Part shown: piece after piece, positions 3,734 through 53,900 of the stretch | Layout: each line of letters opens with the position of its first letter | Position numbering within the stretch: the stretch's first letter is position 1 | Assembly: GCF_039654945.1 (NCBI RefSeq) | Contig: NW_027361675.1 | Coordinates: forward strand, 25,854,001-25,918,000 | Source: Dendrobates tinctorius | Lineage: Eukaryota | Reading direction: 5' to 3' | Length of the DNA stretch: 64,000 nt | Notes under the pieces: generated by a model | Told to the model about the DNA's origin: nothing | The model's input: the letters and a program-made list of their open reading frames with translations, nothing else | The model's database searches: none | Program-made: the position numbers and the translations under genes

Positions 3734-3892
<159 letters not shown>

Positions 3893-8457: not shown

Positions 8458-8458
8458 C

Positions 8459-10362: not shown

Positions 10363-11381
10363 CCCAGGCAGGTTTTTCACCGGCAGTCATTGCAACTATG
10401 ATCAGGGCAAGGAAGCCTGCCTCTGCCAAGCTCTATTATCGTACCTGGAGAGCCTTCTTTTCTTGGTGCGAATCTCATGGACAAGTCCCACTCCCTTATT
10501 ACCTCCCGAAGGTACTAGGTTTTCTTCAATCGGGCCTAGATGCCAAGCTATCCTTAAGTTCGCTTAAGAGTCAGGTGTCGGCGCTTTCAGTCCTTTTTCA
10601 AAAGCGCATTGCTATTAAACCGCAAGTAAGGACTTTCATCCAGGGAGTTTCCCGATTGGTTCCTCCCTACAAACGTCCGATGGATACGTGGGACCTCAAT
10701 CTGGTCCTGACAGCATTGCAAGCTCCACCCTTCGAACCTCTTAGAGAAGTTCCACTCTCCATTCTGTCTCAGAAAGTGTTTTTTCTAGTGGCTATCACCT
10801 CGTTACGCAGAGTGTCGGAATTGTCAGCACTTTCCTGCAGACGACCTTTCCTAGCCTTTCACCAGGACAAGGTGGTTCTCCGCACGGTACCATCCTTCCT
10901 TCCGAAAGTTGTGTCCAACTTTCACCTTAACGAAGAGATTTCACTGCCTTCCCTTTGCCCGGTTCCGGTACATAGAGTGGAGAAGGCTCTGCATACGCTT
11001 GACCTAGTCAGGGCATTGCAGATTTACGTGTCCAGGACTGCACCTTTCCGGAAATCCGATTCCCTCTTCATTCTTACGGAAGGTAGTCGCAAGGGGTTGC
11101 CGGCTTCCAAGGCTACCCTTGCCAGGTGGATCAAGTCCACCATACATGAGGCCTACCGACTTAACAGTTCCCCTCTTCCGGCCGGTATCACGGCACACTC
11201 TACACGGGCAGTAGGGGCCTCCTGGGCCATTCGGCATCAGGCTTCGGCACAACAAGTGTGCAAGGCGGCCACTTGGACTAGCCTACACACGTTTACGAAA
11301 CACTACAGTGTTCATACCCAGTCCTCAGCGGATGCGAGCCTGGGTAGACTGGTTCTGCAGGCGGCAGTACCCCAAGTCTAG
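10338..11381 (+). CDS. DIRS element 1 tyrosine recombinase domain (C-terminal part of ORF3)
   Basis: LRRVSEL...AHSTR...AATW...FTKHY catalytic R-HxxR-W-Y signature in an open frame. Confidence 0.92.
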   Translation: MALETWILTQAGFSPAVIATMIRARKPASAKLYYRTWRAFFSWCESHGQVPLPYYLPKVLGFLQSGLDAKLSLSSLKSQVSALSVLFQKRIAIKPQVRTFIQGVSRLVPPYKRPMDTWDLNLVLTALQAPPFEPLREVPLSILSQKVFFLVAITSLRRVSELSALSCRRPFLAFHQDKVVLRTVPSFLPKVVSNFHLNEEISLPSLCPVPVHRVEKALHTLDLVRALQIYVSRTAPFRKSDSLFILTEGSRKGLPASKATLARWIKSTIHEAYRLNSSPLPAGITAHSTRAVGASWAIRHQASAQQVCKAATWTSLHTFTKHYSVHTQSSADASLGRLVLQAAVPQV

Positions 11382-22571: not shown

Positions 22572-22889
<318 letters not shown>

Positions 22890-27037: not shown

Positions 27038-27316
<279 letters not shown>

Positions 27317-32333: not shown

Positions 32334-33764
32334 GTGGTGTCTGAATCAGGAGGTCTTCCAGTTTCTGACCTCGAGATGGGGAGACCCAGAAGTCGACCTG
32401 TTTGCGAATGCGCAAAACGCAAAAACGACAACCTATTTCTCCCTCAGTCCAACGTACGGAGCCCGGGGGACGGATGCGGTCGCCCATCTGTGGGTCTTCA
32501 GACTGGCCTACGCTTTTCCACCAATCCCTATGCTGGCAAAGACGCTGCAGAAGATCAGATCAGACAAGTTCATGACAATCCTGGTGGCTCCAATGTGGCC
32601 AGGACGGAGCTGGTACAGTTCCCTATTGGACATAGCCCTGGAAGGTCCCTTGCTTCTACCCCAAAAGACCGACCTCCTTTTCCAGGGTCCCTTACTGCAC
32701 CCAAACCCCAGCAAACTGAGTCTAGCAGCTTGGTTATTGAGGCCAACATTCTGAAGGCCAAAGGGCTATCGGATGAAGTAATCCGGACCCTTCAAAAAAG
32801 TAGAAAGCCGATAACAAATGCCATATACGGCAAAATATGGAAGAAATTCTCTTCCTGGTGTCTTCCTGAGGTCCTTGACCCCTTCCATCCCAATATTGCC
32901 CAGGTCCTAGATTTTCTGCAGAAAGGGTTAGAGCTAGGACTTACTCCAAGCACGCTAAGGGTACAGGTGTCTGCCCTTAGTTCCTTTTTTGACCAGGACC
33001 TGGCCAGGCACCGTTGGGTTAAACGATTCATGACCGCTGCAAACAGAATACGGCCTACACTCCCTACCCGGGTTCCCCCCTGGTATCTTAATATAGTGCT
33101 GAATAGCCTAACACAGGCCCCATTTGAGCCCCTGTCGGAAATTTCATTGAGAATGCTCACACTCAAAACAGTTTTTCTTGTAGCAATCACCACTGCTAGG
33201 CGAGTAGGGGAACTACAGGCCCTATCGGTACAGGAACCAAACCTCCTGCTCAACTCGGACAGTATAGTACTGCGCCTAGACGCCTCCATTATGCCCAAAG
33301 TGGTGTCAGACTTTCATAGAGGTCAGGATATCGTGTTGCCCTCATTTTGCCCAAATCCTTCCAATACGAAGGAAGAAAAGTTCCACACCCTGGATGTCCG
33401 CAGGGTGGTTCTCCATTATCTTGAACTAACCAAGGACTGGAGAATCGACCAGAACCTCTTCATTCAATATTCAGGACGGAACAGGGGAAAGAAGGCGACA
33501 AAAAACACGATAGCAAGCTGGATCAAGCAGTCCATCTCCCTGGCATATTCATCAAGAGATCTCTCTCCTCCCGAGATTCTGAAGGCCCACTCCAATCGAT
33601 CAGTCGCTACATCATGGGCAGCAAGAGGGAACGCATCTTCGGAGCAGATATGCAGAGCTGCCACCTGGTCCTCTGTACACACCTTTACCAGACACTACAG
33701 ACTGAATTTTAATAGGGATCTAATATTTGGCAGACGCGCTCTGCAAGCCGTGGTCCCTCCCTAA
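32334..33764 (+). CDS. DIRS element 3 ORF3 with tyrosine recombinase domain
   Basis: ARRVGEL...AHSNR...AATW...FTRHY in an open frame. Confidence 0.85.
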   Translation: MVSESGGLPVSDLEMGRPRSRPVCECAKRKNDNLFLPQSNVRSPGDGCGRPSVGLQTGLRFSTNPYAGKDAAEDQIRQVHDNPGGSNVARTELVQFPIGHSPGRSLASTPKDRPPFPGSLTAPKPQQTESSSLVIEANILKAKGLSDEVIRTLQKSRKPITNAIYGKIWKKFSSWCLPEVLDPFHPNIAQVLDFLQKGLELGLTPSTLRVQVSALSSFFDQDLARHRWVKRFMTAANRIRPTLPTRVPPWYLNIVLNSLTQAPFEPLSEISLRMLTLKTVFLVAITTARRVGELQALSVQEPNLLLNSDSIVLRLDASIMPKVVSDFHRGQDIVLPSFCPNPSNTKEEKFHTLDVRRVVLHYLELTKDWRIDQNLFIQYSGRNRGKKATKNTIASWIKQSISLAYSSRDLSPPEILKAHSNRSVATSWAARGNASSEQICRAATWSSVHTFTRHYRLNFNRDLIFGRRALQAVVPP

Positions 33765-33834: not shown

Positions 33835-34930
33835 GGCCGGGGTCACACTAACCGACGCAAAATACGGTCAGTATTTTACAAGGTGTGGTCGCGTATTTTG
33901 CGCATGTAAGCATCCGTATGTAATCCGTATGGCATCCGTATGGCGAGATTTTCTCGCAGGCTTGCAAAATGGACATATAATGGAGCCCTATGACAGGGTT
34001 TCTAACAGAAACCAAAGAATAGATATAGACACATAGAATGCATATATATATATACATATATATATATATGTATTATATGTGAATATATCTATTCTTTCAT
34101 TTCTTTATTAAACCTGTCAGTGTGAGTTTACTGTATAGCGCACTGAATTGCCGGCTTTGCTAAAAGACACCGGGTGTGTATTTCTCGCAAGTCACATGTG
34201 TGGTCCGTGTGTAAGGCCGGTTTCACATTAGCGCATTTTATGCGCACGCACGGCCGGGGGTAGCTCCGCCCCCGATCCGGCTCTCTGCCCGGCGTGCCCG
34301 CCCCTTGCCTGTAGCGCCGCCTCCTAGCGGACGGCGGCGCCTGCGATCGGCGCACCCTATCTTTAGCATAGGGTGCGCCGATCGTGCGCAGGTCGTGCGC
34401 TAGTTGCGCTTTGACCTGCGCTGCGCACTTATGACGGTGCGCCGTGCGCGCCAAAATCCGAAAAGTTGGATTTTGGCGCGCACGGCGCACCGTCAAAAGT
34501 GCGCAGCGCAGGTCAAAGCGCAACTAGCGCACGACCTGCGCACGATCGGCGCACCCTATGCTAAAGATAGGGTGCGCCGATCGCAGGCGCCGCTGTCCGC
34601 TAGGAGGCGGCGCTACAAGGAAGGGGCGGGCACGCCGGGCAGAGAGCCGGCTCGGGGGCGGAGCTACCCCCGGCCGTGCGCGCGCTGAAAATGCGCTAAT
34701 GTGAAACCGGCCTAATCCGTATTTTTTGCGCACCCATAGACTTGCATTGGCGTATTACGGCCGTAGTACGCTGACAATCGCAGCATGCTGCGATTGGCAC
34801 GGACCGTAGAATACGGATGAGAAATATACGGCTGGTGCGAGGGACCCCATAGAGAATCATTGGTCCGTGTCTAATGCGTGCTTTTAGCGCCTCTCACTCG
34901 GCCGTATTCCTCGCCAGTGTGACCCCGGCC
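33835..34930. mobile_element. Harbinger/PIF-type MITE inserted in the DIRS 3 ICR
   Basis: TIRs ggccggggtcacac / gtgtgaccccggcc; taa and tta flanks. Confidence 0.85.
34215..34712. mobile_element. Nested GC-rich foldback Harbinger-type MITE
   Basis: ggccggtttcacattagcg / cgctaatgtgaaaccggcc; TAA TSD; largely palindromic. Confidence 0.88.
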
Positions 34931-35407
34931 TTACTGGTAATTCGGTTTCTAGGAACCTTCCACGACAGCACTAATATTCCCTCCCTACTTAATACCTTTA
35001 CCGGATGATTCCTGCTCTACTGGCGGTAACTATTCATGCTAGTATGTCCAGAAAAAACACTGGAGGTAGCAGGAAGGGGAGGGTTATTTAACCTCTTTGT
35101 GTTTCCTGTCCCCCATTAGGGCAAGGAGACAACCTCCAAGATGACTGTCGTGGAAGGTTCCTAGAAACCGAATTACCGGTAAGTCTAATTCTATTTTCTA
35201 ATTTCTATAGACACAGAGAGATCTTGTGATCACACTATACTATAATTTCAGATTTGTTGACCATTGATGTAAAATTGTTGATGGTGATTTGTATGGTGGT
35301 GCTCTGCATTTTTTCTTCATTTGCACTGTTTGTATTTGCACGTTTGAACTTTTAATAATTATTAATAGAAAAAATAAACGTTATATTTTGTCGACCCAGA
35401 TCGCTAA

Positions 35408-35845
35408 GGCTGGTTTCACATTAGCGTTTTTCCTCCATGCGCATGCGTCATGCGTGCCTATGTTTAACATGGCGTGCGCATGGTCTTGCGTTTGCACACG
35501 TTCGTATGCTTTTTTGTGCACATGCGTTTTTTTCGTCGTGTGCGCCTAAGTGCGAAAGAGGCAACCTGTTGCATTTTTGGGTCCGCCGAAAGGCGTCAAA
35601 AAAACGCTTGCGCACAGAATGCGACAAAATAACGCATTACAGTCTATGGGAACGCAGGCGTGCGCATGGACATGCTTTCGTCTGCGTTTCCATGCGCATG
35701 CGTTTTTGGCGTAAATATGTGTAGACACTGGTTTTAACCCCTAGAGAACGAATGCGCATAAAAAACGCAAACGCACGCAAAAACGCATGATGCGTTTTTT
35801 GCATGCGTTTGTATTGCGCAAAAAAACGCTAATGTGAAATTAGCC
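35408..35845. mobile_element. Harbinger-type MITE
   Basis: ggctggtttcacattagcg / cgctaatgtgaaattagcc; TAA TSD. Confidence 0.82.
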
Positions 35846-36699
35846 TAAGAAGGATCTATATTGTTTTGGGTATAGCACGGCCCCGACTTTGAGCGCTGAG
35901 AATAATACATACTTGGGATTCCTTTTTATGTAAGAGGTTTCAATAACTCGTACTTGGGATCAATTTGTATGTTAAGAGATTTTTCACATTTCCACCATGT
36001 TAAATTGCAGAATACACCATCCTGGGGCAACGTATGCACAGAATGTCTGGCCCTTTGGTGAGCATGCAGGTACATTATACCAAGGGACTGTTTTGGTGGG
36101 TGTGGGTGCCATTGGCTTGATGTACTAATACCCCAGTTGATGAAAGTTTTTGGGTACAGTAACGTCCCGTGCTGTGACGGGTCTGATAGGGCCAGTCTGG
36201 GAGAGCCGACATTGAGCGCCATCTGCGTGTTGTGTAGGGTGCAACCTCTGCGGTAAGGCAGGGACACTAGTGATTATCGTTCCTATGAATTTGTTTATTG
36301 GGGGCTTCCAGACAAACATTTATGTATTCGCCAGAGTTATTTGTTTTGAATCCAATTTTGGGAGTTTTTAGAGGTTTAAAATAAAATTGATGTTTTACCA
36401 CAATTCTCTTAATGGACTTTACTATACCCAGAAAATGGCAGAAAAACCCGCAAAGGGATAGGCCAAAATGTCAGAGAGGAGTTTCTTGAAATGTTGAAAC
36501 GTTTTCTGCTCGAAAAATGGCAGAAAAACTGCGCACCATAAGAGTCCAACATGGTCACTCCGACACTGGTGGATTCTCTGCTCTACTGTGGACGCCAGGT
36601 CCAAAGTCCAGTGCTGTTGCCACAAGGAGTAAATGGCAGAAGCATGGCTCTGCTCAGCAGGCTGTTTACAATTACGTAATCAACCTTGTCAGGGCAGAG

Positions 36700-36940
36700 C
36701 CATCACGTCAGCCATTTACTCCTTGTGGGGCCTCGTGACATCACCACACGAGGATAATGTACAAGGATTTACCCGCGAATTTTACCTAGAACTACAAATC
36801 CCATGAATCATTGCGCTTTCTGTACTATATCCCATCAAACATTGCGCTAATGCGCTTTTATTCCCTACCAATCAGAGGGTTCGGTATGTCAGCCAGAGCC
36901 CTATAAAAGGCTGACTCACGCTCCCTTCGCTCTCTTTCTG
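36700..36940 (+). promoter_or_regulatory. Pol II promoter of the snoRNA host: CRE-like sites, two ZNF143/Staf-type motifs, CCAAT, TATA and TCT/5'TOP initiator
   Basis: actacaaatcccatga at 36791 and actatatcccatca at 36824; ccaat 36868; tataaaa 36902; ctctctttc about 30 nt downstream; CpG-rich downstream. Confidence 0.85.
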
Positions 36941-37092
36941 CCGTGCTGTCTATCATGATGGTCGGTCTGTTCGGGTGTTACAAGGGCCCGGCCGGCCGCC
37001 ACACCTGTACCATGGCGCTGCCCGTCCCGCAGTCTCCACATAGCTTTACATGGAGGTGACCAGGTGAGGATGAGCCGGCTTCCTTCAGCGTA

Positions 37093-37228
37093 CAGGCCCT
37101 GATCGAAGCTGCGGTAGAACTCAACGTGTCTAACGCGGTCAAACAGAGGCCGACATGAATGTTTCCTTCCGACGGTCGCTGCTCTGGCTCCTGTGCCGGT
37201 GATGGCAACATTATGGGGGAATACAGCT
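37093..37228 (+). ncRNA. SNORA16: H/ACA snoRNA, SNORA16 homologue
   Basis: ggccctgatcgaagctgc...ggtcaaa, H box acatga 37153, gacggtcgc...gcaacatt, ACA at 37223 plus 3 nt; matches recalled human SNORA16. Confidence 0.88.
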
Positions 37229-37247
37229 GTTACTACTGCTCGGTGTG

Positions 37248-37548
37248 CGGTACCGGGGAGGGCGGGCGCAGGGCGCGCGGCGGTAGTGAGCGCGGTACCG
37301 GGGAGGGCGGGCGCAGGGCGCGCGGCGGTAGTGAGCGCGGTACCGGGGAGGGCGGGCGCAGGGCGCGCGGCGGTAGTGAGCGCGGTACCGGGGAGGGCGG
37401 GTGCAGGGCGGCAGTGAGCGCGGTACCGGGGAGGGCGGGCGCAGGGCGCGCGGCGGTAGTGAGCGCGGTACCGGGGAGGGCGCGCGGCGGTAGTGAGCGC
37501 GGTACCGGGGAGGGCGGGTGCAGGGCGGCAGTGAGCGCGGTACCGGGG
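37248..37548 (+). repeat. GC-rich 45-bp minisatellite (gcggtaccggggagggcgggcgcagggcgcgcggcggtagtgagc)n
   Basis: About 7 units, some shortened. Confidence 0.93.
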
Positions 37549-38262
37549 CTGGTAAGCTTGTTGGTGCAGATGAACGGCGGCTCTGCTCTATGGTGGGAAA
37601 TGCAAGCGGTGTGTTGTCCTGCTGGGCCCTAGTAATGCTCTGTGTTAGGTGTAGCGGCACCATGCCCGGGCTTGTAGCCTATTACTGGCATCCAGAATAG
37701 ACGAGGTGTAACCCACCACACTACCGAGCCTGGCATGGGGTATCTCGCTGAAGTATCCATGCCTCCTTGGCATTTAACACAGGCTTGGGTACCTACAGCT
37801 CTACACTAAAGATGAGGGGGTAATTGATTATACTACTATACACTGGTGAAAATGCTTTCTGGTGTCCTCCAGAGCTGCTGCTTTTGGGGGTGAGTTGTGC
37901 ACATATTGTAAGGTCACCATCTGCCCGTCTGGTTAGAGAAGCCCATGTGCACAATGCCAGCTCACACTAGTAGCATTGTCACCCCTGGACACTGCTGGGA
38001 ACTAATGCCTGCAGCATGGGTAATGCGGGCTAATCTGCTATCAGCCCTGTACTTCTCCTTGTAATTTAGAACTTGGTACTTAATGTCTGTTTTTTGTTTT
38101 TTTTCTAGATGAAGTTCCATGTGGAGATGAAGCTGTCCTTTAAAGGTAATTGTTATTTCTCAATAGACATAATCACACACATGGCGGTCCTTCATAGCTT
38201 GGCTTGACATGGTGGGTGTATCATCGCTGTGAGCCCCATCGGGGACAATCTAAATTCCCTAT

Positions 38263-38952
38263 GGCTATGTGCACACGGTGCGTTTCTGCTGTATATAGTC
38301 AGCGGATTTGGCCCTGCGTATATGCAGCAGAACTGCATGTGATGTACAGTACCATTGTAGGCTATGTAAAACACAATCTGCTGTGCACATGCAGTTTTTT
38401 TTTCTGCGTGGATTTGGTGCAGAATGAGAAAAGCAACATGTCATTTCTCTTGGTGCAGATTTCTACCTGCTCGATTCTAGAAAACCTCAGGGGAAACTGC
38501 ACAAAACGATGCAGTGAGGCTATGTGCACACGATGCAGATTTGCTGTGGATCCGCAGTGGACTTTTCCGCACAGAAACGCTGCAGATCTGCGCTGTGATT
38601 TACAGTGCAATGTAAATCAATGGAAAAAAAGCTGCAGAAAAATCAGTGTGGAATTGCTGCAGACTTAAAAGTGCATGTCACTTTTGTGCTGATCTGCAGT
38701 GTTTCTGGACCCCTCCATGATAGAAATCCGCAGTGGCAAAAACTGCAGAAAATCCACATAAAACCAGTGGCAAATCTGCGGCTCCGGATTCTGCCAGGAG
38801 ATGCTGATTTTGTGCAGAAAATTCTGCACCACTTTTCCTACGTGTGCGCACAGCCTAAAACCACACAAAATATGCAGGTCATTTGACCTGCAGACTTCGT
38901 GAAATCGGCGCAGAAAATTCCAAAGTAAAATATGCACTGTGTGCACATACCC
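38263..38952. mobile_element. Harbinger-type MITE with a related MITE nested at 38518-38855, inside a degenerate SINE
   Basis: ggctatgtgcacac / gtgtgcacataccc ends; flanking sequence matches the SINE at 53962. Confidence 0.75.
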
Positions 38953-39300
38953 TAACAGTATGTCTTTTGGAATGTGGGAAGAAACCCACGCAAACAGTGT
39001 CTGAGCTATATGAAAAGCCAATCGGTGGTCATTACCAGGATTATTTGGCAGGCAGACATCTTGTATTATCGGCTGCCCACCATGGGGGGGAAGTGCTGTT
39101 ACAATTTTACATGTGCATAAAGAGATCATAGCACAATAGATTTGCTTGTTCACTGGGTCAGTGTTAACATGTTAAGAGGGTAGAGGCAATTGGGACCTTG
39201 GTCCCACTGATCAGTGTCTTAAAGTTTAGATACTTCCATCTTTGGAAGTTTCCTGCTGATCTGAGGTCTATAGCAGGGTTTACTAGACTGGATCTGTTAA

Positions 39301-39832
39301 CCACTTAATGACCAGAGCTTTTTTCAGGGGTTTTTTGTTTTCGCTCCACTTCTTCCCAGAATCATAACTTTTTTATTTTTCCATCAATATGGCCATGTGA
39401 GGACTTGTTTTCAAGTGCGGTGAAATTGCAAAAAAAAGTGCAATCCCACACTTTTTTTTTTTTTTTTTTTTTTTTGGCTTTTTTTTTTACTAGGTTCACT
39501 AAATAATAAAACTGACCTGCCATTATGATTCTCCAGGTCATGGAGTGGGTTTTTTTTTTTTTTTTTTTAAATCTAGGTGGTGAGAATTCCAAAATTGGCT
39601 AAAAAAATTATGCGCCACTTTCCAATACCTGTAGCGTCCCCATTTTTCGTGATCTCTGGTTGGGTGAGGGCTTAATTTTTTGTGTGCCGAGCTGACGTTT
39701 TTAATACCATTTTGGTGCAGATATGATCTTTTGATCGCCCGTTATAGCATTTTAATGCAATGTTGCGGTGACCAAAAAAGTGCTTCTGACTATCTTTTTC
39801 CTGCTATATCGTTTAGCAATCGGATTAATCCT

Positions 39833-39875
<43 letters not shown>

Positions 39876-40481
39876 ATCGGGCAATTCTAAACGCGATACC
39901 TAATGGTTTTTTGTTTTTTTTTTTGGAAGGGGGGGTAACTTAAACTTTTATAGTCTATTTTTTTTCATATCTTTTTTTTTTTTTAAAAAAAACTTTTTTA
40001 TTTTGGCATTCTTCAATAGCCTCCATGGGAGGCTAGAAGCATGCACAATTTGATCGGCTCTGCTACATAAAGGCAATGAGCAGATCACCACCTATGTAGC
40101 AGAATTACAGCATTGCTATGAGCACTGACCACTGGGTGGCACTCAGATCAATCTGGCATCAACAGCCATATAGGTCTCAAGGAGACCTCTGGTTGTCATG
40201 CCAACGCATTGCTAACCCACAATCACATGACAGGGGTTGGCGATGCGTGTATTTCCAGGCTGGAAGCGCTGGTTAAATGCCGCTGTCTGCATTTGACAGC
40301 AGCATGTAACGTGTTAATAGGCGCCGGTAGATCGTGATTCCACCTGTGCCTATTGTGGGCACATGTCAGCTGTTCAAAAAAGCTGACATGTCCTGGCTTT
40401 GATGCAGGCTCACCGCCAGAGCCTTCATCAAAGTGGGGATCTGACCTTGGATGAACTATTGTGTCTAAGGTCAGAAAGGGG
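39301..40481. mobile_element. Non-autonomous TTAA-type DNA transposon
   Basis: ttaa-ccacttaatgacc ... ggtcagaaagggg-ttaa. Confidence 0.75.
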
Positions 40482-40542
40482 TTAAACTACAGTAATGTAG
40501 CCACTGTTTAGGTTGATTCACAATGGTTGCTTTTGTTGACTG

Positions 40543-40675
40543 ACGCATGTTTACCGAGGGCTGCAGCTAGTATGTAGCAGCAGCTTTTCCAACGACATGC
40601 AAGATAAACGGTGGGGCTTTGACAGGTTGGGTCTTAATCTGGTGCCTGAAGCTGTCACTCTACCCACCTACAAAG
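40543..40675 (+). ncRNA. SNORA44: H/ACA snoRNA, SNORA44 homologue
   Basis: gcatgttt..agggctg...ccaac..catgc, H box agataa 40602, ctttgacag...gctgtcactc, ACA at 40670; about 85 nt upstream of acceptor 40759. Confidence 0.88.
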
Positions 40676-41047
40676 TTCTGACAGTTACCATCACTGTCCT
40701 AATCTTATTTAATCTTTCACCCTTTGCAATGATTAATCTTCTGTGACCTTTATTTTCAGGTGTGCTGCTAGAAGCATTATTACCCAAAGGCTATAGATCA
40801 CTTGAGTGGTAAGTGCTTTTCAAATTAAAAGGGTTAAACAAAAGTAATAAGCGAGTGTGCACTCGCTGACTGGAACTGACAGCTGTGCATTAAATCCAGT
40901 GAAGTGAATGGACTAATGGTCCCACTTGCACACCTCTGCTCTAGCCATGTGGCCTTGAAGACCATTGTTGGGAGTATTGGTCCCAGTGGTGTGATCTCTG
41001 CAGTCACTGCTTTGCATAGTTAACATCTATATGATGGTGGGTTTTGT

Positions 41048-41115
41048 CTGGTCTGTGATGACCAATTACTTTGGAGACTGTTGGATGACTCCTGCGGATA
41101 TGGGACTGAGGCCGG
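41048..41115 (+). ncRNA. SNORD99: C/D snoRNA, SNORD99 homologue
   Basis: Box C gtgatga 41055, guide tgcggatatggga, box D ctga 41106, terminal stem ctggtct/ggccgg. Confidence 0.9.
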
Positions 41116-41790
41116 CAATGTCCACCAATAACATGTTGATGATCTGTGAACTATAATTTGTGGTTTTCACAACTTGGCGATTGAGGATGGCTTGTGGTGT
41201 GATTTGTGGTTCTCCAAGAATATAAGGAATTACGGATGTCTTTCAATTGGCATATTGATGTCTACATAGGTAATTGTTGTAGGAGTGTGCAGTGTTCAAT
41301 TTTTAAGCTTGCTAAAAACAAGCTGTTTTTCAGTACAAATGCAGCCAACATGGTTATAAAGTACATGGCTGTTTCTTTATAATGTAGAGGTTCAATACCC
41401 TAGCTTATCAAATATAAAGGAAGAATGCAACTCCTTGCTGACTTTTTTTTTTTTTTTTTTTCTTTCAACCTTTCAGGTAAACTTGATACTCACAGCTTTC
41501 AACATGGATGGTGAGTTACAAAATTACTTCTGTATGCCTTCCACTAAATGAAATGCTATATCCAGCAGACTGATGCATAAATTTGTACATTGGTCAATGA
41601 TGTCTTGTTTTTTATGCTTATCCTGCAGCATTCAGTTGTGGCTTAAAGTGAACCTGTCAGCAGGATTGTGCTCAGTAAACTATAGTCAGGTTGGTGCTGT
41701 AAGGCTGAGTTCACACTAGGTGTTCTTCCTGCATTTTTCTGCAGTAAAGGAGCTGTGGCAAAAAAACACAGGACTTGGTGCGTTGCATGC

Positions 41791-41831
<41 letters not shown>

Positions 41832-42109
41832 TCAGTTCTGTAAATAACTCTGACAGTAACATGCTCTGTCCAAAAAACCATGCAAAGCACAAAATACTGA
41901 TGACAAACCAAGCTGTGTGCGTGAGATCTCTGAAGTTGTCTCATAGGCTTTTGCTGGTACCATAAAATGCAACTGAAAATTGGCATAAATGCCCAGTGTG
42001 AACTTCGCCTTGTACTAATTAGTGATACCTTGGTTGATATTCTTCTTGTGGTGGTTGTGTAATCTTCAGTTAGATTCATGTGCTCCGGGTCAGCATGTGG
42101 GGCGGCTTT

Positions 42110-43068
42110 ACATTACACTGGCTGCCCATTCATTATAGGATCCAATTCAAAGTACTTGTTCTCTTCCACAAAGCTGTCCACGGTGCGGCACCCCCTTACA
42201 TATTCCTCCATTTCTGTCTATCAGCCTAGCCGATCGCTGCACTCTGCAAACGACTTTCGACTAACCTCTGCACTAATCCGAACCTCCCACTCCCGAATCC
42301 AAGACTTCTCCCGTGCTGCTCCTATCCTCTAGAATGCTCTACCTCAAGAAATTAGGACTAACCACAATTTGCATAGCTTTAGGCGCTCCCTCAAAATACA
42401 TTTGTTCAGAGCGGATTATCACTTTCATTAATCAGTCATTCTGTGTAAGGGTACCGTTACACCTAGCGATGTACCAGCGATCCTGACGAGCGATATGATG
42501 CGGTCAGGATCGCTGGTGCATCGCTAGTGAGCTGCCACACAGGCAGATCTCACCAGCGACATCGCTGGGGACGGGGATCGCTACTTACCTGTCAGACGCG
42601 GCGATCCTGACGTCCTCCTGCCCGGCTCCACGCGTCGCAGGAAGTGACCAACAAGGAATGGTCCAGGAGCTTCTCGCGCGACCAGCGATAATCAGCGGGG
42701 GAGCCGGTCGGAGGTAAATATCACATGCAGCAATATCGCTGCTACGTCACAAAATCGGTGACTTTACAGCGATATTGCTAGCGATATCGCAGTGTGTAAC
42801 GGGGGCTTTAGTGTGTGTCGCCCATTCACTATCTCATCAATCCTTCACTCCCTCAAGATGGCTGGACCATCAATGTAAATACACACCTGTACTTTGTATC
42901 TCCCTCACCTCATTGTAGATTGTAAGCTCTCATGAGCAGGGTCGTCTTATTTCGTCTTTTGCTTTAATTATTGTATTGTTAACGATGTTACTTTTATGAC
43001 TTGTGTTTTGAAACTGTTAAACTGAAGTGCTGTGGAATATGTTGGTGCGATATAAATAAAGATTATAT
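42110..43068 (+). mobile_element. L2 LINE 3' fragment with a Harbinger-type MITE inserted at 42449-42807
   Basis: cactggctgccc, SHSRIQDFSRA, L2 3' tail; MITE ends gggtaccgttacac / gtgtaacgggggct. Confidence 0.8.
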
Positions 43069-44490
43069 TCATCTGTACAGGCTTATGACAGATCCTTCAG
43101 TCACCTGCCCCTATTTTACATACTGCATGTTCTATGTTAATTTAAATAAAAAAAAAAATCTCTGAGCATAATGGTGGTGGCACCTGCACAGTAATGTGTA
43201 GCATTATGCCTCAGATATTGCTGTTAAATTAACCATTAAATTGGCAGCTGCTACAATGCATGCACAATAACGCCTGTCATGTTCTGATGGATGATGCTAC
43301 ATCAGTGCCATTATACTGAAGCCCAGTTTCTTTTTTTCTTCTCTATAAAAAATGGCAGTAGCATATATCAGAATGTGATAGCTGCTACTGCACATGTGCC
43401 TTTGCTGGCACCTTTTTAATGTAGGTGTTCTTACGCAGTAATGGAGGCATAATGCTATACATGCTTACTGCATAGGTTCACTATTCTGCTCAAAGGAAAC
43501 TTGTTTCATATTTGCAGTAACTGGTGACCTGTCAGAAACCATACAAATGAATATGTAAGCAGAGCACCACACAGACCTCTCCCCCTACACAGGCTGCCCC
43601 GGAGCACAAGAAGCTCTTAAAATGAGAACAAAGATTAAACCACCACAGGATGGAAATCATCAAATGGCTCCCCCATAGCCTGGAAGAGGTCATCTATGCA
43701 AAGTGATAAAATGATTTCTCAACAAGACATCTGATATGAGGCATACAGTGACTTTCTTCCAGCATTCTATAACTTGTATGCCTATATGAAAAGTTAAAAG
43801 AAAATCAAATATTGGGAGATTCCCTTTAACAATGACAAGGTCAGACTGCTGTAAGAACTCATTGTAAATTGTTCACAAAGTTAATAGCTTTTATCACTTG
43901 GCTAATGGCACATCCTGTTGCATGGTTTATACAAGGGTGTTTACTTTATGACCACCCAAAGGAAAGTCTAACCAAGTTTGGTCTTTCCTTTCTGAGGGCA
44001 GATCCTAGGGCAATCTGGTACTCTAGACCTAACAATGTCCTGTTCATTGGCAGAAAGCTGACAACTATCAATGGTTGTGTGCATGGAGGCCACAGTTTTT
44101 GAATATTAAACATAGCAGGAGCTTGTTGTGAGGATTAAGAGCTGCAGCTGACTGTTCTCAAAACTACAGCAGGAAGCTCAGAATGTGACATACTGCTGAA
44201 ATTGGTGATTCAGCCTTATATTACAGATTTACTGTATAATCGTCAGTTTAACACTGCCTACCTAGCCTTACTGACTGCTCCAGTGTCTCTTCAGCAGTTA
44301 GTCTGGGTGGTTGTAGTAAATGCTCTTGTGAGCTGTCATTTTATTGCTGGACTCATAAAATTCTCAATATGCGAGCTATCAATTGTCTGAGATAGAAGTA
44401 AAATGTCAGGTCTAAGATTTAATTAGTGATGTATGTAGTCTTCTATTGTCAGACATGCTTTGACTTCTTGCTGTAAGGATGTGGACAACT

Positions 44491-44563
44491 GATACATGAT
44501 GAAAACAAAACAATAGCTGGAATTACCGGCAGAAACTTCTTGTTGATAACTGTTTTCTGACTG
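44491..44563 (+). ncRNA. SNORD65: C/D snoRNA, SNORD65 homologue (18S Um627 guide)
   Basis: Box C atgatga 44496; guide aatagctggaattaccg complementary to 18S CGGTAATTCCAGCT; box D 44557; about 80 nt upstream of acceptor. Confidence 0.9.
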
Positions 44564-44733
44564 TCCTGTTTGTCTTATTATGATGTGGTGTAATTACAAA
44601 CCTGCCCAACTAACCTGCTTCATTATTTCACTTCTCCAGGGACATGCATTGGATGGAAGTCAGATGTTCTATAAGATCAGGTATGTTATTACTATTCCAC
44701 CTGATGAATGGGTGGTGAGAGTGCTACAAAAGA

Positions 44734-44808
44734 CTGATATGATGAGACTCTGGAATAGGAAGTGCCGTCAGATGCGATAACTGACGATGATTTTCCACTC
44801 TGACTTGC
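44734..44808 (+). ncRNA. SNORD49: C/D snoRNA, SNORD49 homologue
   Basis: Box C atgatga 44739; aataggaagtgccgtcaga..cgataactgacga matches recalled U49; box D 44800; external stem aaagactg/cagtcttt. Confidence 0.9.
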
Positions 44809-45742
44809 AGTCTTTAATTATACTGGTCATTTGCGCAAGGCTTGGACATGTCTGTCCATCTAGAGAACTCTTCACCAGCTAGGCTTAAGGAGGACATGTA
44901 TACAATTAGTCATACAACTATTAATCACCAGACTTGCTTAAAGGTCTAAGTGCTAGATCTCAAATTCTACATCAACATGGCTTAAAGAGGTTTTGCTTCA
45001 ATTTTACAATGACCTATCAGTCTCCTCTTTCCCTCAACCAGCTATCTGTAGCATTGGCTGCCAGCATGAAGTGCTCACCTGCTGAGCTGACCATCTACTC
45101 ATAGTGGCTGGGGCTTGGTACTGCACATCTGCCTCCTATTCAAATCAATAAGAGGCAGATGTGGTGGCCACAGGGTACTGCACACAAGTGAATGGAGCAG
45201 CTCAGCGGGGGTACTTCTGGCCAACTCCAGAACAGCTGATCAGCAGAGGTGGCTGGGTGTTGGACCTTGGCTGATCAGACATTGATTACCTATCTGCAGG
45301 ATAGGTAATGTAAAAGTGGTGGACAACCTCTATCTAGATGTTAATATTACAGATTGTACACTTAAAGGGGTTCTCTGAGAATTGTTATACTTTTTCTAAC
45401 TGCTTTTAGCTAAAAGATTTGTTCTCTTTATCTTATGCACTGTTGAGATTGTAATGGTGGCAGCTTCCATAAATGTGTAAGAACATCCGCTTGAGACATC
45501 AGGTCAGAGCAGCATCTTGCCAGGCATCATGAATTTGCATCCCTCTTTTGTCAACTTGACAGACTTTAGCTAACACAATGAACATCCATCTTGCAGTGCA
45601 GGGAGTACCTGTGTCTCCATGAAGCCCATTCTAGGATGGCTGCACAATGCTGGCTGAAAGCTGCCATCTTTAAAATCCTTTCAAAATGCACTACAAATTT
45701 TGCAAGTTTTTGCTAAATAAAGGTATTTGGAAAAATGTTTAA

Positions 45743-46294
45743 AGGGGTTGTCCAGATCAGTCTGCATACTGGCTGGCAGTATGTCTAAGGCCGGTTTCAC
45801 ATTTGCGTTAAAGGCCGCAGTGTCGGCCTGCGCACAGCCGCCACTAAGCCCTGCCGCGCCTCCGCCGGTAGCTCCGCCTCCGGGCGCATGACGCTGCATG
45901 TGTCCCCTATCTTTATCACTGAGGATGCAGGCCGTGCGCAGAATGCGTTTGGCGGCGCCTGTGTTCTTTTGACGGTGCGCCGAGCGCAACCAAACTGCAA
46001 CAGGTTGCCTTTGGCTCCGGTCAGCACACCGTCAAAAGGACGCAGGCACCGCCAAAACGCATACTGTGCACGGCCTGCATCCTCAGTGATAAAGATAGGG
46101 GATGCAGCGTCATGCGCCCGGAGGCACGGCAGGGGCGGGGCTTGGCGGTGGCCGTGTGCAGGCCGCTGCTGCCTTTAACGCAAATGTGAAACTGGCCTTA
46201 CTCGTACATGAATCCCTGCAGTGCATGCACTGGGGGAATTCAGAAGTCTGCAGTCGGTGACTGCAGACTTAATGGTTTGGACTGCACAACCCCT
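45743..46294. mobile_element. T2/Kolobok-type MITE with nested foldback Harbinger MITE (45789-46197)
   Basis: ttaa-aggggttg...caacccct-ttaa; inner ggccggtttcacatttgcg / cgcaaatgtgaaactggcc. Confidence 0.8.
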
Positions 46295-47184
46295 TTAAGG
46301 GTGATGTCTCTCAAACCCTTAATTGCAATTTACAGTTGATGGTGACAAGTAGGTTGCTGGCTGACTTCCCCAAATGATGCAGTGTGGATGTTCATACATG
46401 TCTTTAATGTCTGCTACAAAGTAATTTAAAATATGATTTATATTTTTTTTTTTTTCTTGTACAGGTTTGATACCAAAGGACATCTGAGATGGAAGCTGTT
46501 AAACTCGTCAATGATAACCTTCTAACTGGTGGACCTACTAAATGAGATTCAGATACAGGACTAGGCCTCAGTCTTTGCCTTTACATGTACTTGATTCTTG
46601 GAAATAACTTGTTTGATTTTCATAGTATACATGTTAGATCTGAGGCTCCAGCACATGGTGGTCTACAAAAGAGAAGCTGAAGTTTGACACTAATGAGGAT
46701 TTTATAATAAACCTGAATTTCTGAAAACTCTTGTTAGTGGTGGTCTCCTCTATATTCACTAATACATTTTTCTTAAGTGCATACTGTTTTTGCCCTTCTT
46801 CTATACCTTAGTGCCACTGTTTATAGAGTGAGATGTAGATTATTCATTCACTTGTAAAATGTGTACCCCCATCTGGCTTTATTTGCTCCTGAATCAACCA
46901 TAAGAAGCAGTCTGTAAAGGGTGTGTTGGCAGTTCATGGTTTCTGCATCTCTTCCTGTAACTTGCTAATTTGGGTATTAACCCCTTCCTGACATGCACTG
47001 TACATATTCTGCTCTGCAGGAGCTGCATACCCATAAACTGCAGTATAGGTAGTGGAGTGATCACATGGCCTCGTGCTGAGCGCAGTGACGATTGGTTGCG
47101 GGTGTGAACTGACACCCTGCAGCAACGGCTACAATCGTTGCTAGCACCAGTCACTGGTGTTTAACCCTCCTGATGCTGCAGTTA

Positions 47185-49372
47185 ATAAAAAACTTTATTT
47201 CTATAGCGCTGACATATTCTGCAGCACTTTACATTTCAGAGGGGACTTGTACAGACAATAGATATTACAGCATAACAATAGTCAACATAGATCATAACAG
47301 ATACCAAGAGGGATGAGGGCCCTGCTCGCAAGCTTACAATCTGAGGAAAAAAGGTAGACACGAAAGGTGGATGGTAACAATTACCCTGATTGTGTGGACC
47401 AGCCAAAACGTTAAGTGTGTAACAGTACAAACACAGGGCTAATAGATGCATAAAGCATGTGGGAACATGATGCAGGGAACCTGGCTATGGTAAAACTTTT
47501 GACTGTGCCACACGGGGATAGTTAGGTTAATGTGTTGAGGCGAAATAAGGCTGGGTTCACACGTAGCGGAACTATCGTGGAAATTACCGAGAATTTCAAA
47601 TTCCATTTCGTGGGAAAATCGCATTTTAAATTCCTGAGATTTTCCTGCCAAAAAACTAGCCTTTTGCAAGCGTAATTAGCTTGCAGAATTGCTAGCGTTT
47701 TCCAAACAATCTGTAGCATTGCTTGGAGAACTGATTGACAGGTTGGTCACACTCGTCAAACATAGCGTTTGAGTGACCAACTTTTTACTATTGAGGCTGC
47801 CTATGCGGCATCAATAGTAAAAGATTGTAAAAAAAAATTATTTAAAAAAATTGTTCTCACCTTCCGACATCCCGCACAGCTTTCCTGCCTCTCAACGCTC
47901 CCGGTCCCAGAAATCCTTTGTGACAATTACCGCGATGACGTCCGTTCTCGCGGGATTGCGACGACTGAGACTTCGCGATCCCGCAAGAACGGACGTCATC
48001 GCTTGCAAAGGCTTACTGGTACCAGGAGCATGGAGAGAGGATGTCGGAAGGTGAGAATAACAATATTTTTTATTTTAAATTCTATGTTTTACAGTGATAT
48101 GGTACCCAAAGCCCAGAGGACAGTCTCCTCTCCGGACAGTGGGTACCATCCGCAAATGTTCTGCTTACTTTTTGCATGGTGTGCACAGCCACATGCGGAA
48201 AGTAAGCAGAACAATGCATTCCTATGGGTGCAGGATCGCCACGATTCTGCAAAATTAATGAGCATGCTGCGTTTCTTACCGCGAAGCGATGCTACCGCAG
48301 CATTGCGGAATCCAATAGGAATGCATGGGATGCTTATTTTTCACGGCAAAATCGCGTGGTTAAAACTGCCATGGAAAAGCCAAAAAAAAATGCTACTTGT
48401 GAACTCAGCCTAAAAGTTTTCAGGGCATGCTTAAAATTGAGAGGATTGGGGACTAATTGTATTGACCTGGAAAGTGCATTCCAGAGAATTGGCACTGCAC
48501 GTGTATAGTCTTGGAGACTGGAGTGGGAGGTTCTGATTATTGAGGATGATAACCTCAGGTCATCAGCAGAACGGAAGGCACGGGTAGGGTGGTAGACTGA
48601 AACGAGGGAGGAGATATAGGATGGTGCTGATCCATGGAGAGCTTTGTGGGTGAGGGTAATAAGTTTGTACTGGATTCTGGAGTGGATGGGTAGCCAGTGT
48701 AATGACTGGCACAAGGTAGAGGCATTGGTGTAACAATTTGCGAGGATTATGATCCTGGCTGCAGCATTCAAGACAGATTGGAGGTGGGAGTTTGGTAAGA
48801 GGGAGACCGATTAAGAGAGTTGCAATAGCCCTGATGAGAATGAATAAGAGAAACCGTAAGTTTTTGTGGAATCAAAAGTAAAAAAAATTGAATGCTAGAA
48901 ATGTTTGAGGTGCAGATAACAAGAGCGAGCCAGTGATCGGATGTGGGGGGGCAAAGGAAAGCTCGGAGTTCAGTATGACCCCCAAGACAGCGGACATGTG
49001 CTGGGGAGTAATAGTAGAACCACACACAAACAAGCGGGAGGAAACAAGTTCAGTCTTTGACAGGTTCAGTTTCATAGTGAGGACATGATAGACACAGCGT
49101 TTAGACAATCACAGGTGTTTTCTAACAAGGCAGGCGTGATATCCGGAGAAGTGTATAATTGGGTATTGTCAGCATAGAGATGGTACTGGAAACCAAATCT
49201 ATGGATTGTTTGACCAATAGGGGCAGTATATGAAGCGAAGGGGGCATAGGACTGATCTTTGAGGAACCCCAACAGTAAGGGGAAGATGAGTAGGAGGAAC
49301 CAGCAAAAGATACAGTAAAGGAGCGGTCAGAGAGCTAGGAGGAAAACCAGGAGTTAGTATTGACTGCAACAT
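47185..49372 (-). mobile_element. 5'-truncated L2 LINE (same family as 14045-15331) interrupted by a Harbinger-type MITE at 47549-48410
   Basis: Minus-strand YADNTQLY and LHWLP; 3'UTR matches the 14-15 kb copy; MITE ends ggctgggttcacac / gtgaactcagcc. Confidence 0.88.
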
Positions 49373-49805
49373 TGAGGAGATTGCACATAGGAAGGGGGCT
49401 CCCTGTGTTCCATATGAACAACTCTATGTAATTGCGTTCTGATGGTCTCCATGGAGACCCCTGGCCCCAAGATGGCCACTGGGTCCTGCAGGGAAAGTGG
49501 TTTGAGAGTGCCTGTTGAGAGGAGGCATGGACTTTCCTCCTTCCCTGCCCATCAGATGCTGATTGATACTTGGCAGTGCAGAAGCATTGCAGAGTATCAA
49601 TCCGCAATCTTGGTGATGTCAAATAATGCGATACGTTACACTATTGATCCCGAGGGAAATTATGGTATCACAGCAGCGTTACAACAGTATTACAAACAAA
49701 ACATGAACAGCATTATATAGAGTAATTACTAGACACAGATTTTGCACATGACTAACCACAATACGTAACAAACAAAGGTGCACAAATCTCCGATCATTTC
49801 CCTTA

Positions 49806-50167
49806 GGGTACCGTGACACTTAGCGATGCACCAGCGATCCCGACCACGATATGACGCGGTCAGGATTGCTGGTGCATCGCTAAGTGGTTGCTAGTGAGCT
49901 GCCACACAGGCAGATCTCACCAGCGACATAGCAGCGGTCGCTACTTACCTGTCAGATGCGGGATCCTGACATCCATCCACGCGTCGCTCGTCATCACAGC
50001 AGGAAGTGGCCGACGAGAATCGACCCAGGACATTCTCGCGCGATCAGCGATAACCAGCGGGGGAGCCGGTCGGAGGTAAGTATCACACAGCGATATCGCT
50101 GCTGCGTCACAAAACTAGTGACGTTATATTGATATTGCTAGCGATATCGCTTAGTGTAACGGGCCCT
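49806..50167. mobile_element. Harbinger-type MITE (family of 42449-42807)
   Basis: gggtaccgtgacact / agtgtaacgggccct; TTA flanks. Confidence 0.8.
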
Positions 50168-50921: not shown

Positions 50922-53900
50922 TTTTCTCTCTCACCCATGACAGCACCACGGAAAGGGCATCTGCCCTTCAGGGTCAGGAACCTACAGATAAAAAGGGCGG
51001 TACCTCTCCTCCGCCTTCAGTTGGGTTCCTGTCCCTGACGGGTGACCCACAGGACGGCGTTACCTGCGTGCTCCTGGAGTCCGGATCCGTGGCCGACCTG
51101 TCTGAATGATGGCAGCGGGGAGGCCCCTGTCACGGCGGGTGCGGTGCCCGATGTGGGCTGCCAGGTGAGCGGGGGGGGGGGAGAAGTCGGAGCCGTCGCT
51201 CCGGAAAGGAGGTCGGGGATCGCGCGGACCTGGAAAACATGCAGGCAGCGCCATGGTACAGAGTTGTACCAAAATGGCCGCTGCCCTGGAAATAGAAACC
51301 GGGAACCGGTGCATAGGCAGGAGCGCTCTCCCAGACAGACGCGGTGCAGAATGGGAGCGGTGACGTCACTCGCCGGGAAATTTAAAATGGTGGGGCTGGA
51401 AACACTCCTGGTTGGAAGCGGTCCTGAGCAATGGGGGATAGCGACCAGCAACAGGAGCAGCAAGCCAAGCAGCACCATCGCCAAAAGGAACGGAACAGAA
51501 GAAATGGCCGTTCCAGCAGCCACTCCACGCAGCCCAGCACGTCCGCTGCAAGGAGCAAATCGCCACCGGGAGATCAGCCTGTACAGGACCTGACTCCATC
51601 TCCCGAATTGGTACCTGCAGCCATGTACTTTTGGGTGAGTGATCTTCGTGAATATTCACCATTGTAATAGAATTCCTTTCCCTTATTAGGGAAAGAAGAA
51701 GGGGAAAAAGAAGAACAGGGAATGTCCCACTTGTACTAGACCCCCTACCTATATCTTGGGAGAAATAACTCTGTGAATCTTGTACGAAAGAAGTCCTCTG
51801 TCAGGAAACCCCGGATTTCGCCTCTGACCTAAGAACCGTGATCAAACCGGAGGTTCAGAGTGCCCTTATATTCCTTAAGCACAGGGACAAAACAAAAAAG
51901 AAAGATACGATAGTGTCTTCCCAGTCGGATTCTTCGACGTTGGGAGAAATCACCTCTAAAACCTCGGAATCCGGCTCCTCATCCTCAGACGAGGAAACGG
52001 GGGGCGTCACTGTAGACAAGCTAGTGAAAGCTGTAAGGTCTACCATGGGGGTATTGGACCCTAGGCCTGATAAAACAGTCCAGGACATAATGTTCGGGGG
52101 ACTAGGCCAGAAAAAGCGGAGAGTCTTCCCGCTAAATGAAAATGTTCAGGGGCTAATCAAAAAAGAACGGGACAAAACGGACAGGAAAAACACCACCGTC
52201 CCTTCCCTTAAAAGAAAATATCCCTTTGATGGAGAGGCGTTCACTTCTTGGGTAAGGCCCCGAAGCTCAACGTAGCCGTCGCAAAGGCCTCAAAAAAATT
52301 CACTCTCCCCTTCGAGGACATGGGCACCCTCAGGGATCCCCTAGATAAAAAGGCAGATACTTTCCTTAAAAGGGCATGGGAGTCAGCAGGGGGTAATCTC
52401 AGACCAGCCATAGCGGCGACATGTACCTCAATAGCCCTAATGGTATGGGTGGACCAACTTGATAAGCAACTAAGGGAAGGGACGCCAAGGGATAAGAGCC
52501 TATATTCTATCCCAGTAATAAGGGGAGCAGACTCATCGGCCGATTCAGTCCGATTATCGTCCAAAGCAGCAGCGCTCTCAAATGCAGCCCGAAGAACACT
52601 ATGGCTCAAACGTTGGCCAGGGGACTTACAGACAAAAATGAAATTGTGTTCAATCCCCTGTGAAGGGAAATTCCTTTTTGGGGAGACATTAGATGACATC
52701 CTACAGAAAGCTGGGGACAAGAAGAAAGGGTTCCCAAATTTGGGGCCTGTAACGTTTAAGAGGCCATTTCGGAATAGAAAGTTTTTTCAGAGGAGACAAA
52801 AGTGGGATGACAGAAGCAAAGATAGAGGGTTCCTCTTTGGTAACTCGGCCCGAGACAAAAAGCCCTCTAAGTGACAGTTTGCCCAGGGTGGAGGGAAGGC
52901 TAACCCTTTTCCTTCCAGCCTGGAAGAAAATCTCAAACAACCTGTGGATAATAAACCTAATCCAGGAGGGCCTAAAAATGGACTTTCTCTCTTTCCCACC
53001 TCAAAAGTACGTAATAACTCCGCTAAGATCCAGTACGCAGGAGCAGGAAGCCCTAGAAAACGAGGTCCTAAACCTGGTAAAAAAAGGAGTCCTCCAGGAG
53101 GTTCCCCTGCAGGAAATGGGCAGAGGGTTCTACTCCCCTCTTTTCCTGGTGACCAAACCAGACGGCACTTTCTGGACGATCATAAACTTAAAAAATTAAA
53201 CATACGTCAGGAATCAAAGTTTCAAAATGGAGTCGATCAGGTCCACCACCAAAATCCTGTTCCCGAACTGCTTCATGACGCTATTAGATCTCAGCGACGC
53301 CTATTATCACGTCCCCATTCACAAAAACTCCAGAAAATATCTCAGGTTAGCTGTCTCAATAAAGGGCTAGGTAAAAGAATTCCAGTACAGAGCCTTGCCA
53401 TTCGGAATATCTGTAGCCCCACGGGTGTTTACCAAAATAGTAGCGGAAATGACGGCCCATATAAGGGAGCAAGACATAATAATAGTCCCGTATGTGGACG
53501 ATTTTTTAATAGCAAGCAGCTCGGCCCGAAAATGCCAGGAACAGAAGGACAGGGTGATGGACACTCTACAAGGCCTAGGCTGGCTCCTAAATCTGAAAAA
53601 AATCAAGATTGGAGCCCAGCAGAGTACAGGAATTCTTGGGTCTAACAATGGACTCAAAACATTCAAGAGTGCCGTCTCCCAGACTGCAAGAAAGAGAAAA
53701 TCACTCAAATTATAACAAGAGCAATCCAAAATCCCTCCATGACGTTAAGGAAAACTATGTCACTGCTGGGTTCACTATCCTCCTGCCTGCCAGCAGTCCA
53801 ATGGGCTCAGTTACACACTAGAGAGCTCCAGTGGGACGTATTAGCTAACCAGTCAGCTGTAGGGGGACACCAAGAGGGTCGTATTACCCTACATTCAAAG

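Follow-up and report, generated by a model that had tools for sequence, protein, structure and literature searches.

A spliced non-coding frog transcript joins snoRNAs of the amniote host genes SNHG12 and SNHG29

Can the small nucleolar RNAs (snoRNAs) that human divides between two host genes on different chromosomes, SNHG12 and SNHG29, be carried by a single host in a frog? The question is raised by a 64,000-nucleotide stretch of the Dendrobates tinctorius genome (contig NW_027361675.1, positions 25,854,001 to 25,918,000 of the forward strand), which was analysed in full and is called the window below; all positions refer to its own numbering. A preliminary description, made from the letters of the window, had placed SNORA16-, SNORA44-, SNORD99-, SNORD65- and SNORD49-like sequences in successive introns of one gene behind one promoter. 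We conclude, with a probability of about 0.85, that the locus is one real, expressed, spliced and polyadenylated non-coding snoRNA host gene that occupies positions 36932–46729 of the plus strand.

Scanned with Rfam at gathering thresholds, the whole 64-kb window returns exactly five snoRNA matches, all on the plus strand between 37092 and 44805, whose E-values of 4e-6 to 3e-14 exclude chance. They belong to the five families that had been named from likeness, and each exceeds the gathering score of its family:

37092–37228, plus strand: SNORA16 (H/ACA), intron 1; Rfam RF00190, 69.4 bits against a gathering score of 35, E = 2e-11
40543–40675, plus strand: SNORA44 (H/ACA), intron 2; Rfam RF00405, 66.1 bits against a gathering score of 55
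41047–41117, plus strand: SNORD99 (C/D), intron 3; Rfam RF00608, 64.3 bits against a gathering score of 60
44494–44562, plus strand: SNORD65 (C/D), intron 4; Rfam RF00571, 45.5 bits against a gathering score of 41, E = 4e-6
44735–44805, plus strand: SNORD49 (C/D), intron 5; Rfam RF00277, 71.9 bits against a gathering score of 37, E = 3e-14

The host has five introns, each with a single snoRNA in sense orientation; spliced contigs delimit introns 2–5, and intron 1 is read from the sequence. In minimum-free-energy folds, SNORA16 displays the succession of a hairpin, an H box (ACAUGA), a second hairpin and an ACA that lies 3 nucleotides (nt) from the 3′ end, and SNORA44 is likewise canonical, with AGAUAA as its H box and a terminal ACA 3 nt from the end. 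Boxes C and D are intact in SNORD99, SNORD65 and SNORD49, and the Rfam alignments show guides identical to the family consensus in all three: the SNORD99 guide is located upstream of box D (CUGA; its box C is GUGAUGA) and the SNORD65 guide upstream of box D′ (CAGA). The target base, counted five nt up from box D or D′, is A for SNORD99, U for SNORD65 and C for SNORD49. The predicted guide sites match, in human numbering, 28S-Am2774, 18S-Um627 and 28S-Cm4426, respectively, and the same target sites are tabulated for the chicken orthologues of the three snoRNAs (PMC2653536, additional file 1).

We also rescanned positions 34000–50000 permissively, at E ≤ 1. SNORA61 (RF00420-type) has no match in this region at that level, nor in the whole window at gathering score, and none of the five snoRNAs, including SNORD49 and a Xenopus-type SNORA16, has a second copy at E ≤ 1 in 34000–50000. 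The rescan also returned a SNORD50-like 23-bit match inside the last exon and a minus-strand ceN106 match, both of which we rejected as being at chance level.

Evidence on the transcript comes from assembled contigs of four public runs placed on positions 40745–46744, for which depth is one figure per contig. Runs X1 and X2 are RNA-like and stem from the same organism, X5 is RNA-like and stems from a related organism, and X13 is of unknown kind; the RNA nature of the runs is a guess, backed by the spliced joints and the A-tail described below. The contigs and, for exon 1, the sequence yield a model of six exons:

36932–37063, plus strand: exon 1, 132 nt, from a putative 5′-terminal oligopyrimidine (5′TOP) start to a predicted 5′ splice site CAG/GTGAGG
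38109–38145, plus strand: exon 2, 37 nt, the loose end of X2 and X5 contigs that enter exon 3; flanked by AG and GT
40760–40808, plus strand: exon 3, 49 nt, joined to exon 2 in X2 and X5 and to exon 4 in X5; donor GTAAGT
41477–41510, plus strand: exon 4, 34 nt, with the joint 41510/44640 in X1, X2 and X5; the last exon of the SNHG12-like half
44640–44680, plus strand: exon 5, 41 nt, bounded by the joints 41510/44640 and 44680/46465
46465–46729, plus strand: exon 6, 265 nt, with the joint 44680/46465 in X1, X2 and X5; AATAAA at 46706–46711 and a poly(A) site at about 46729

The joint 41510/44640 (GT..AG, 3129 nt skipped) ties the SNORD99 side of the locus to the SNORD65/SNORD49 side, which upholds the earlier proposal of a single host for both snoRNA sets. 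Its contig depth is 2637 in X1, 1889 in X2 and 646 in X5, compared to 2913, 1802 and 800, respectively, for the joint 44680/46465 (GT..AG, 1784 nt skipped). In each run the two joints are about equally deep, and thus essentially all RNA that contains exons 5 and 6 appears to pass through exon 4. Furthermore, the last 13 letters of exon 4 appear in X13 as a loose end before 44640. In the upstream direction, an X2 contig carries 138 letters ahead of exon 3, about 35 of which are exon 2 while about 103 more lie further upstream, and in an X5 contig exon 2 sequence precedes exon 3, again with further upstream letters beyond. At the 3′ end, an A-tail follows position 46729 in X5 (one run of a related species), 18 nt past the AATAAA hexamer, in agreement with the poly(A) site predicted for 46729/46730. 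Exons 2 to 6 are spliced into a chain that ends in a poly(A) tail, and all five introns have GT..AG ends and polypyrimidine tracts. Introns 3–5 and the link between exons 2 and 3 are borne out by the spliced contigs, with small corrections to the ends of exon 3 (40808) and of exons 4 and 5 (41510 and 44680).

The same joints bear on the alternative that the locus comprises two adjacent hosts, an SNHG12-like gene that ends after exon 4 and an SNHG29-like gene that starts between 41.5 and 44.5 kb, with the joint 41510/44640 arising from occasional read-through. The amniote state is indeed one of two genes (PMC2653536, PMC9622897), no other intron is as long as intron 4 (3.1 kb), which is filled with repeats, and contigs cannot show where transcripts start or end. 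However, the exon 4–5 depth matches that of exons 5–6 in three runs, the 34 nt of exon 4 form an internal exon that has a strong GTGAGT donor but lacks an adjacent poly(A) signal, and intron 4 is present at the level of precursor messenger RNA only, contig depth in introns being about 20 vs about 2000–2900 for spliced contigs. With joints of similar depth, a separate promoter or poly(A) site between 41510 and 44490, which would have refuted the earlier proposal, is hardly to be expected. We thus regard a pair of adjacent hosts as very improbable.

The single host gene is present in the same spliced form in the second frog species (X5). Its exon model measures 558 nt, in which the longest ATG-initiated open reading frame (ORF) has 34 amino acids (aa) and the first one stops inside exon 1 (local script). 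Exon 6 differs from its counterpart in the related species at 14 of 268 letters (~5%), and the neighbouring introns differ at 3–5%. The exon is no better conserved than the introns next to it, as would be expected if the exons of the host are not its product.

One further segment, 41186–41269, was considered as a main exon, with an AG acceptor 69 nt past SNORD99 and a GTAATT donor, and was rejected because an X5 contig joins exon 3 directly to exon 4. Its first base after the candidate acceptor, 41186, is A instead of G in unspliced X1 and X2 contigs, and the segment is a possible cassette exon.

Introns 4 and 5 contain conspicuous repeats. In intron 4, positions 42145–42944 are a very high-copy repeat with internal palindromes, many aberrant joints and a contig depth of up to ~300,000 (X13); it is probably a transposon family that accounts for the large size of the intron. 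In intron 5, positions 45770–46200 form a large, nearly perfect inverted repeat, the centre of which (45951–46053, minus strand) gives a sub-threshold mir-130-like match (32.5 bits against a gathering score of 40.6). As the X13 contig depth across 45770–46200 is in the thousands, the element is a repeated one rather than a single-copy hairpin gene.

Where the transcript starts was read from the sequence, in which two candidate promoter elements precede exon 1:

36868–36872, plus strand: CCAAT box, at about −64; putative promoter element
36902–36909, plus strand: TATAAAAG, a TATA element, at about −30; putative promoter element

The putative start, C36932, is followed by seven pyrimidines and lies 30 nt past TATAAAAG. 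Positions 37000–37750 form a CpG island with an observed/expected CpG ratio of 1.1 and a GC content of 0.7, compared to 0.6 and 0.47, respectively, for the window. A 5′TOP promoter with its start at 36932 appears to be the best reading of these features, and we infer that exon 1 is used: SNORA16, at 28 nt into predicted intron 1, is placed sensibly only if it is. Directly after SNORA16, intron 1 contains a GC-rich minisatellite (37247–37548) with a 45-nt unit, about 6.6 copies and 85% matches, to which much of the CpG-island signal is due. At 36590–36730, shortly before the promoter, an inverted repeat with arms of about 20 nt looks like a small transposon remnant and gives a sub-threshold mir-1269-like match (30 bits against a gathering score of 100).

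Several points weigh against a single host gene that extends over the whole interval. The start site and exon 1 rest on sequence and not on reads; the contigs are assembled, and their joints span exons 2–6 piecewise, with no single molecule from exon 1 to exon 6 among them. Contig depth, on which the comparison of joints is built, reflects abundance poorly. SNORA61, which belongs to the amniote SNHG12 set, is absent. Lastly, further copies of SNORD49 and SNORD65 may reside in a separate SNHG29-like gene outside the window.

The upstream neighbour of the host gene is KDM1A, also on the plus strand and as described before, of which the following exons match human LSD1:

3734–3892, plus strand: KDM1A exon, human LSD1 residues 370–417, E = 2e-25
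22572–22763, plus strand: KDM1A exon, human LSD1 residues 599–661, E = 1e-38
27128–27313, plus strand: last coding exon of KDM1A, human LSD1 residues 789–850 of 852, E = 1.2e-30 (phmmer against PDB)

The host gene start is 9.6 kb past the KDM1A stop codon. This distance on a shared strand, together with a start that is itself a prediction, would suit an explanation in which the host RNA is a spliced 3′ extension of KDM1A read-through and no independent gene exists. However, the CCAAT box, the TATA element, the TOP-type start and the CpG island are found exactly at exon 1, the donor of exon 1 is strong, and SNORA16 follows 28 nt into the predicted intron, all of which makes such read-through scarcely credible.

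The position of the independent host gene next to KDM1A had been described as a difference from human. KDM1A and SNHG12 are both on human 1p, where KDM1A is not known to be an immediate neighbour of SNHG12. The difference thus stands as one of neighbours, but it amounts to a local rearrangement in one linkage group and not to a change of chromosome. Considering the cargo order SNORA16, SNORA44, SNORD99 and the linkage to KDM1A (1p), the frog gene is best read as the SNHG12 counterpart, with the SNORD65/SNORD49 pair as additional cargo. The immediate neighbours of human SNHG12 are other genes, and the frog gene, in adjoining KDM1A, still has human-1p-type linkage. Chicken SNORD99 likewise points to this linkage, as it is located on chr23 together with PUM1, a human-1p gene (PMC2653536 table).

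The division of these snoRNA sets between two human genes, which the preliminary description had stated, is confirmed by the literature. Human SNHG12 hosts SNORA44, SNORA61, SNORA16A and SNORD99 (PMC5223416) in the intron order ACA16, ACA44, ACA61, HBII-420 (PMC2653536, additional file 5), and human SNHG29, at 17p11.2, hosts SNORD49A and SNORD49B, both in intron 2, and SNORD65 (PMC9622897; 10.64898/2026.02.07.704501). In chicken, ACA61 and HBII-420 map to the expressed sequence tag CK986810 on chr23 at 2.86 Mb (PMC2653536, tables and additional files 3 and 5), and U49 (intron 2) and HBII-135 (intron 4) map to the mRNA CR391615 on chr19 at 5.11 Mb (PMC2653536, additional files 3 and 5). As the two-gene state is found in both human and chicken, the split predates the divergence of birds and mammals and is at least as old as the amniote ancestor. 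The frog order, SNORD65 then SNORD49, is the reverse of that in chicken, SNORD49 (intron 2) then SNORD65 (intron 4); the human order is presumably also SNORD49 then SNORD65. The original mention of the same order as in human therefore applies to the SNHG12 part (SNORA16, SNORA44 and SNORD99, minus SNORA61) and not to the SNORD65/SNORD49 part.

Like SNHG12, which is known from human, mouse, chicken and Xenopus, the frog gene is a non-coding multi-snoRNA host in which SNORA16, SNORA44 and SNORD99 follow each other in the same 5′–3′ order, one per intron. Unlike SNHG12, it lacks SNORA61, which SNHG12 carries between SNORA44 and SNORD99, and has two added introns that hold SNORD65 and SNORD49. Furthermore, it has one copy of SNORA16, whereas the SNHG12 of Xenopus has, according to a figure legend, an extra, retargeted SNORA16-like guide (Deryusheva et al. 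2019, PMC6984369, Fig. 6 legend). The resemblance to SNHG29 is that SNORD49 and SNORD65 occupy adjacent introns of a non-coding RNA that is spliced and polyadenylated. SNHG29, however, is an independent gene in a different chromosomal context, and in human it has SNORD49A and SNORD49B in one intron, whereas the frog pair, with a single SNORD49, forms the 3′ half of a larger gene and shows no sign of a promoter of its own. With UHG/SNHG1, GAS5, U17HG and U19HG the frog gene shares exons that are tiny and poorly conserved, introns with a single snoRNA each, a putative TATA/CCAAT promoter with a start at a C ahead of a pyrimidine run, and short upstream ORFs predicted to trigger nonsense-mediated decay. 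From 5′TOP non-coding snoRNA host genes in general it does not differ in principle.

How could the frog and amniote arrangements have arisen from a common one? Because the order of SNORD65 and SNORD49 is reversed, neither a plain fission nor a head-to-tail fusion suffices, and at least one further step is needed, which may be, for example, an intragenic duplication followed by a loss. Such steps are common, judging by the ‘type 2’ clusters of PMC2653536 and the discussion of PMC6984369. Two histories were weighed within this constraint, on the basis of the frog, chicken and human arrangements.

One history takes separate hosts as ancestral and lets SNORD65 and SNORD49 enter the 3′ part of SNHG12, by transfer or by copying, in the amphibian or anuran line, with their old host lost or persisting elsewhere. 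The 1p-type linkage kept via KDM1A argues in its favor, as it makes SNHG12 the resident and lets SNORD65 and SNORD49 look like incomers. Changes of this kind have precedents: the discussion of PMC6984369 holds that orthologous hosts of different taxa never agree fully in the order, intron position and family content of their snoRNAs, a variation also seen in PMC2653536, and the SNHG12 of Xenopus had, by the Fig. 6 legend of PMC6984369, already gained its extra SNORA16-like guide. On the other hand, a simple fusion would put SNORD49 ahead of SNORD65, unlike in the frog, and no retroposition scars (A-tails, target duplications) are visible in the sequence beside SNORD65 or SNORD49. We give the arrival of the pair in a resident SNHG12 about an even chance.

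The converse history, in which the joint gene is ancestral and the amniote stem moved SNORD49 and SNORD65 to another chromosome where they acquired their own promoter and became SNHG29, is in our judgement conceivable but doubtful. In every species examined these two unrelated snoRNA families share a host, which suggests that they travel jointly at the DNA level. Human SNHG29 is arranged head-to-head with LRRC75A, where an existing bidirectional promoter could be captured. It is described beside that gene (10.64898/2026.02.07.704501). Since the snoRNA sets are split in both chicken (chr23/chr19) and human (chr1/chr17), it would take no more than one event in the amniote stem (PMC2653536; PMC9622897). 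However, the frog order is the reverse of that in chicken, and a plain fission does not yield the amniote gene; the creation of a new host gene is also a bigger step than the joining of an existing one. Under this ancestral-tetrapod reading, which stays tentative, one SNHG12-type host would have carried all six guide families, and the difference between the frog and amniote orders could stem from differential loss out of a SNORD49–SNORD65–SNORD49 intermediate. The probability that is left falls to more complex histories, including those in which a second host is still present in the frog. For hosts of SNORD49 and SNORD65 in Xenopus or fish, a literature search gave nothing beyond the legend of Fig. 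6B in PMC6984369, a drawing of the SNHG12 cluster of Xenopus.

In terms of processing, we propose that RNA polymerase II would transcribe a single host of the UHG/GAS5/SNHG type with six short exons, and that each intron lariat would be debranched after splicing and trimmed by exonucleases to the core protected as a small nucleolar ribonucleoprotein (snoRNP). Five guides would be released in this manner, SNORA16 and SNORA44 as pseudouridylation guides along with SNORD99, SNORD65 and SNORD49, both the processing and the targets being predictions. The exonic RNA is probably throw-away and would be degraded by nonsense-mediated decay: its first ATG-initiated ORF stops as early as exon 1 and leaves the last exon junction far downstream, a configuration that elicits such decay. 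The one promoter (CCAAT, TATA and a 5′TOP-like start) would co-regulate all five ribosomal RNA (rRNA) modification guides.

The placement of the snoRNAs within their introns varies. SNORA16 begins close to the 5′ splice site, as described above, and SNORA44 is located 84 nt before its 3′ splice site. SNORD65 lies 77 nt before the 3′ splice site and has only a short stem in its predicted fold. SNORD99 lies 359 nt before the 3′ splice site and folds with a long external stem of about 17 paired positions, and SNORD49, which follows its 5′ splice site by 54 nt and is 1659 nt away from the 3′ splice site, folds with an uninterrupted 8-base-pair external stem (44729–44736 with 44808–44815). Hirose and Steitz reportedly distinguished two modes of assembly for intronic C/D snoRNPs. 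SNORD99 and SNORD49, which are badly placed for splicing-coupled assembly, are the ones that alone have long stems, and this fits the two modes. It lends circumstantial support to the view that SNORD99, SNORD65 and SNORD49 may be functional at their present places.

The gene type is well known; the variant to be noted lies in the combination of cargo and the reversed order of SNORD65 and SNORD49, and the interest of the locus is moderate. The cargo of two amniote host genes located on different chromosomes is expressed in frogs from one, albeit predicted, promoter, with validation at the transcript level, and five guides for the modification of both 18S and 28S rRNA would be co-regulated in the frog lineage. 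Nothing but cargo and promoter defines a non-coding snoRNA host, and the origin, merging and death of such genes are poorly documented, so this locus can be used for tracing the birth or fusion of host genes against outgroup genomes. If the ancestral joint state were true, it would provide a dated and traceable origin of a non-coding host gene. It is also a real gene that protein-based annotation would overlook. As the switching of snoRNAs between introns and hosts across vertebrate classes is well described (PMC2653536 and, in its discussion and figure legend, PMC6984369), we regard the locus as an instructive example and not as a surprise.

The KDM1A exons span more than 23 kb (3734–27313, plus strand), with introns filled with transposons, and the C-terminal tail of the protein differs slightly from human past a conserved FLG motif. 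An AT-rich palindrome at 34014–34097 matches seven microRNA families, on one or both strands, far below gathering score and was rejected as a low-complexity artefact. In the downstream part of the window, from 46.7 to 64 kb, only repeat-type ORFs were seen. Long ORFs of the retroelement type are located at 6886–11381, 31130–33764 and 52230–55746, one of them inside a KDM1A intron. Near 53.4 kb there is a reverse-transcriptase-like stretch with a YVDD motif, and an ORF of 590 aa (stop to stop) occupies 54–55.7 kb.

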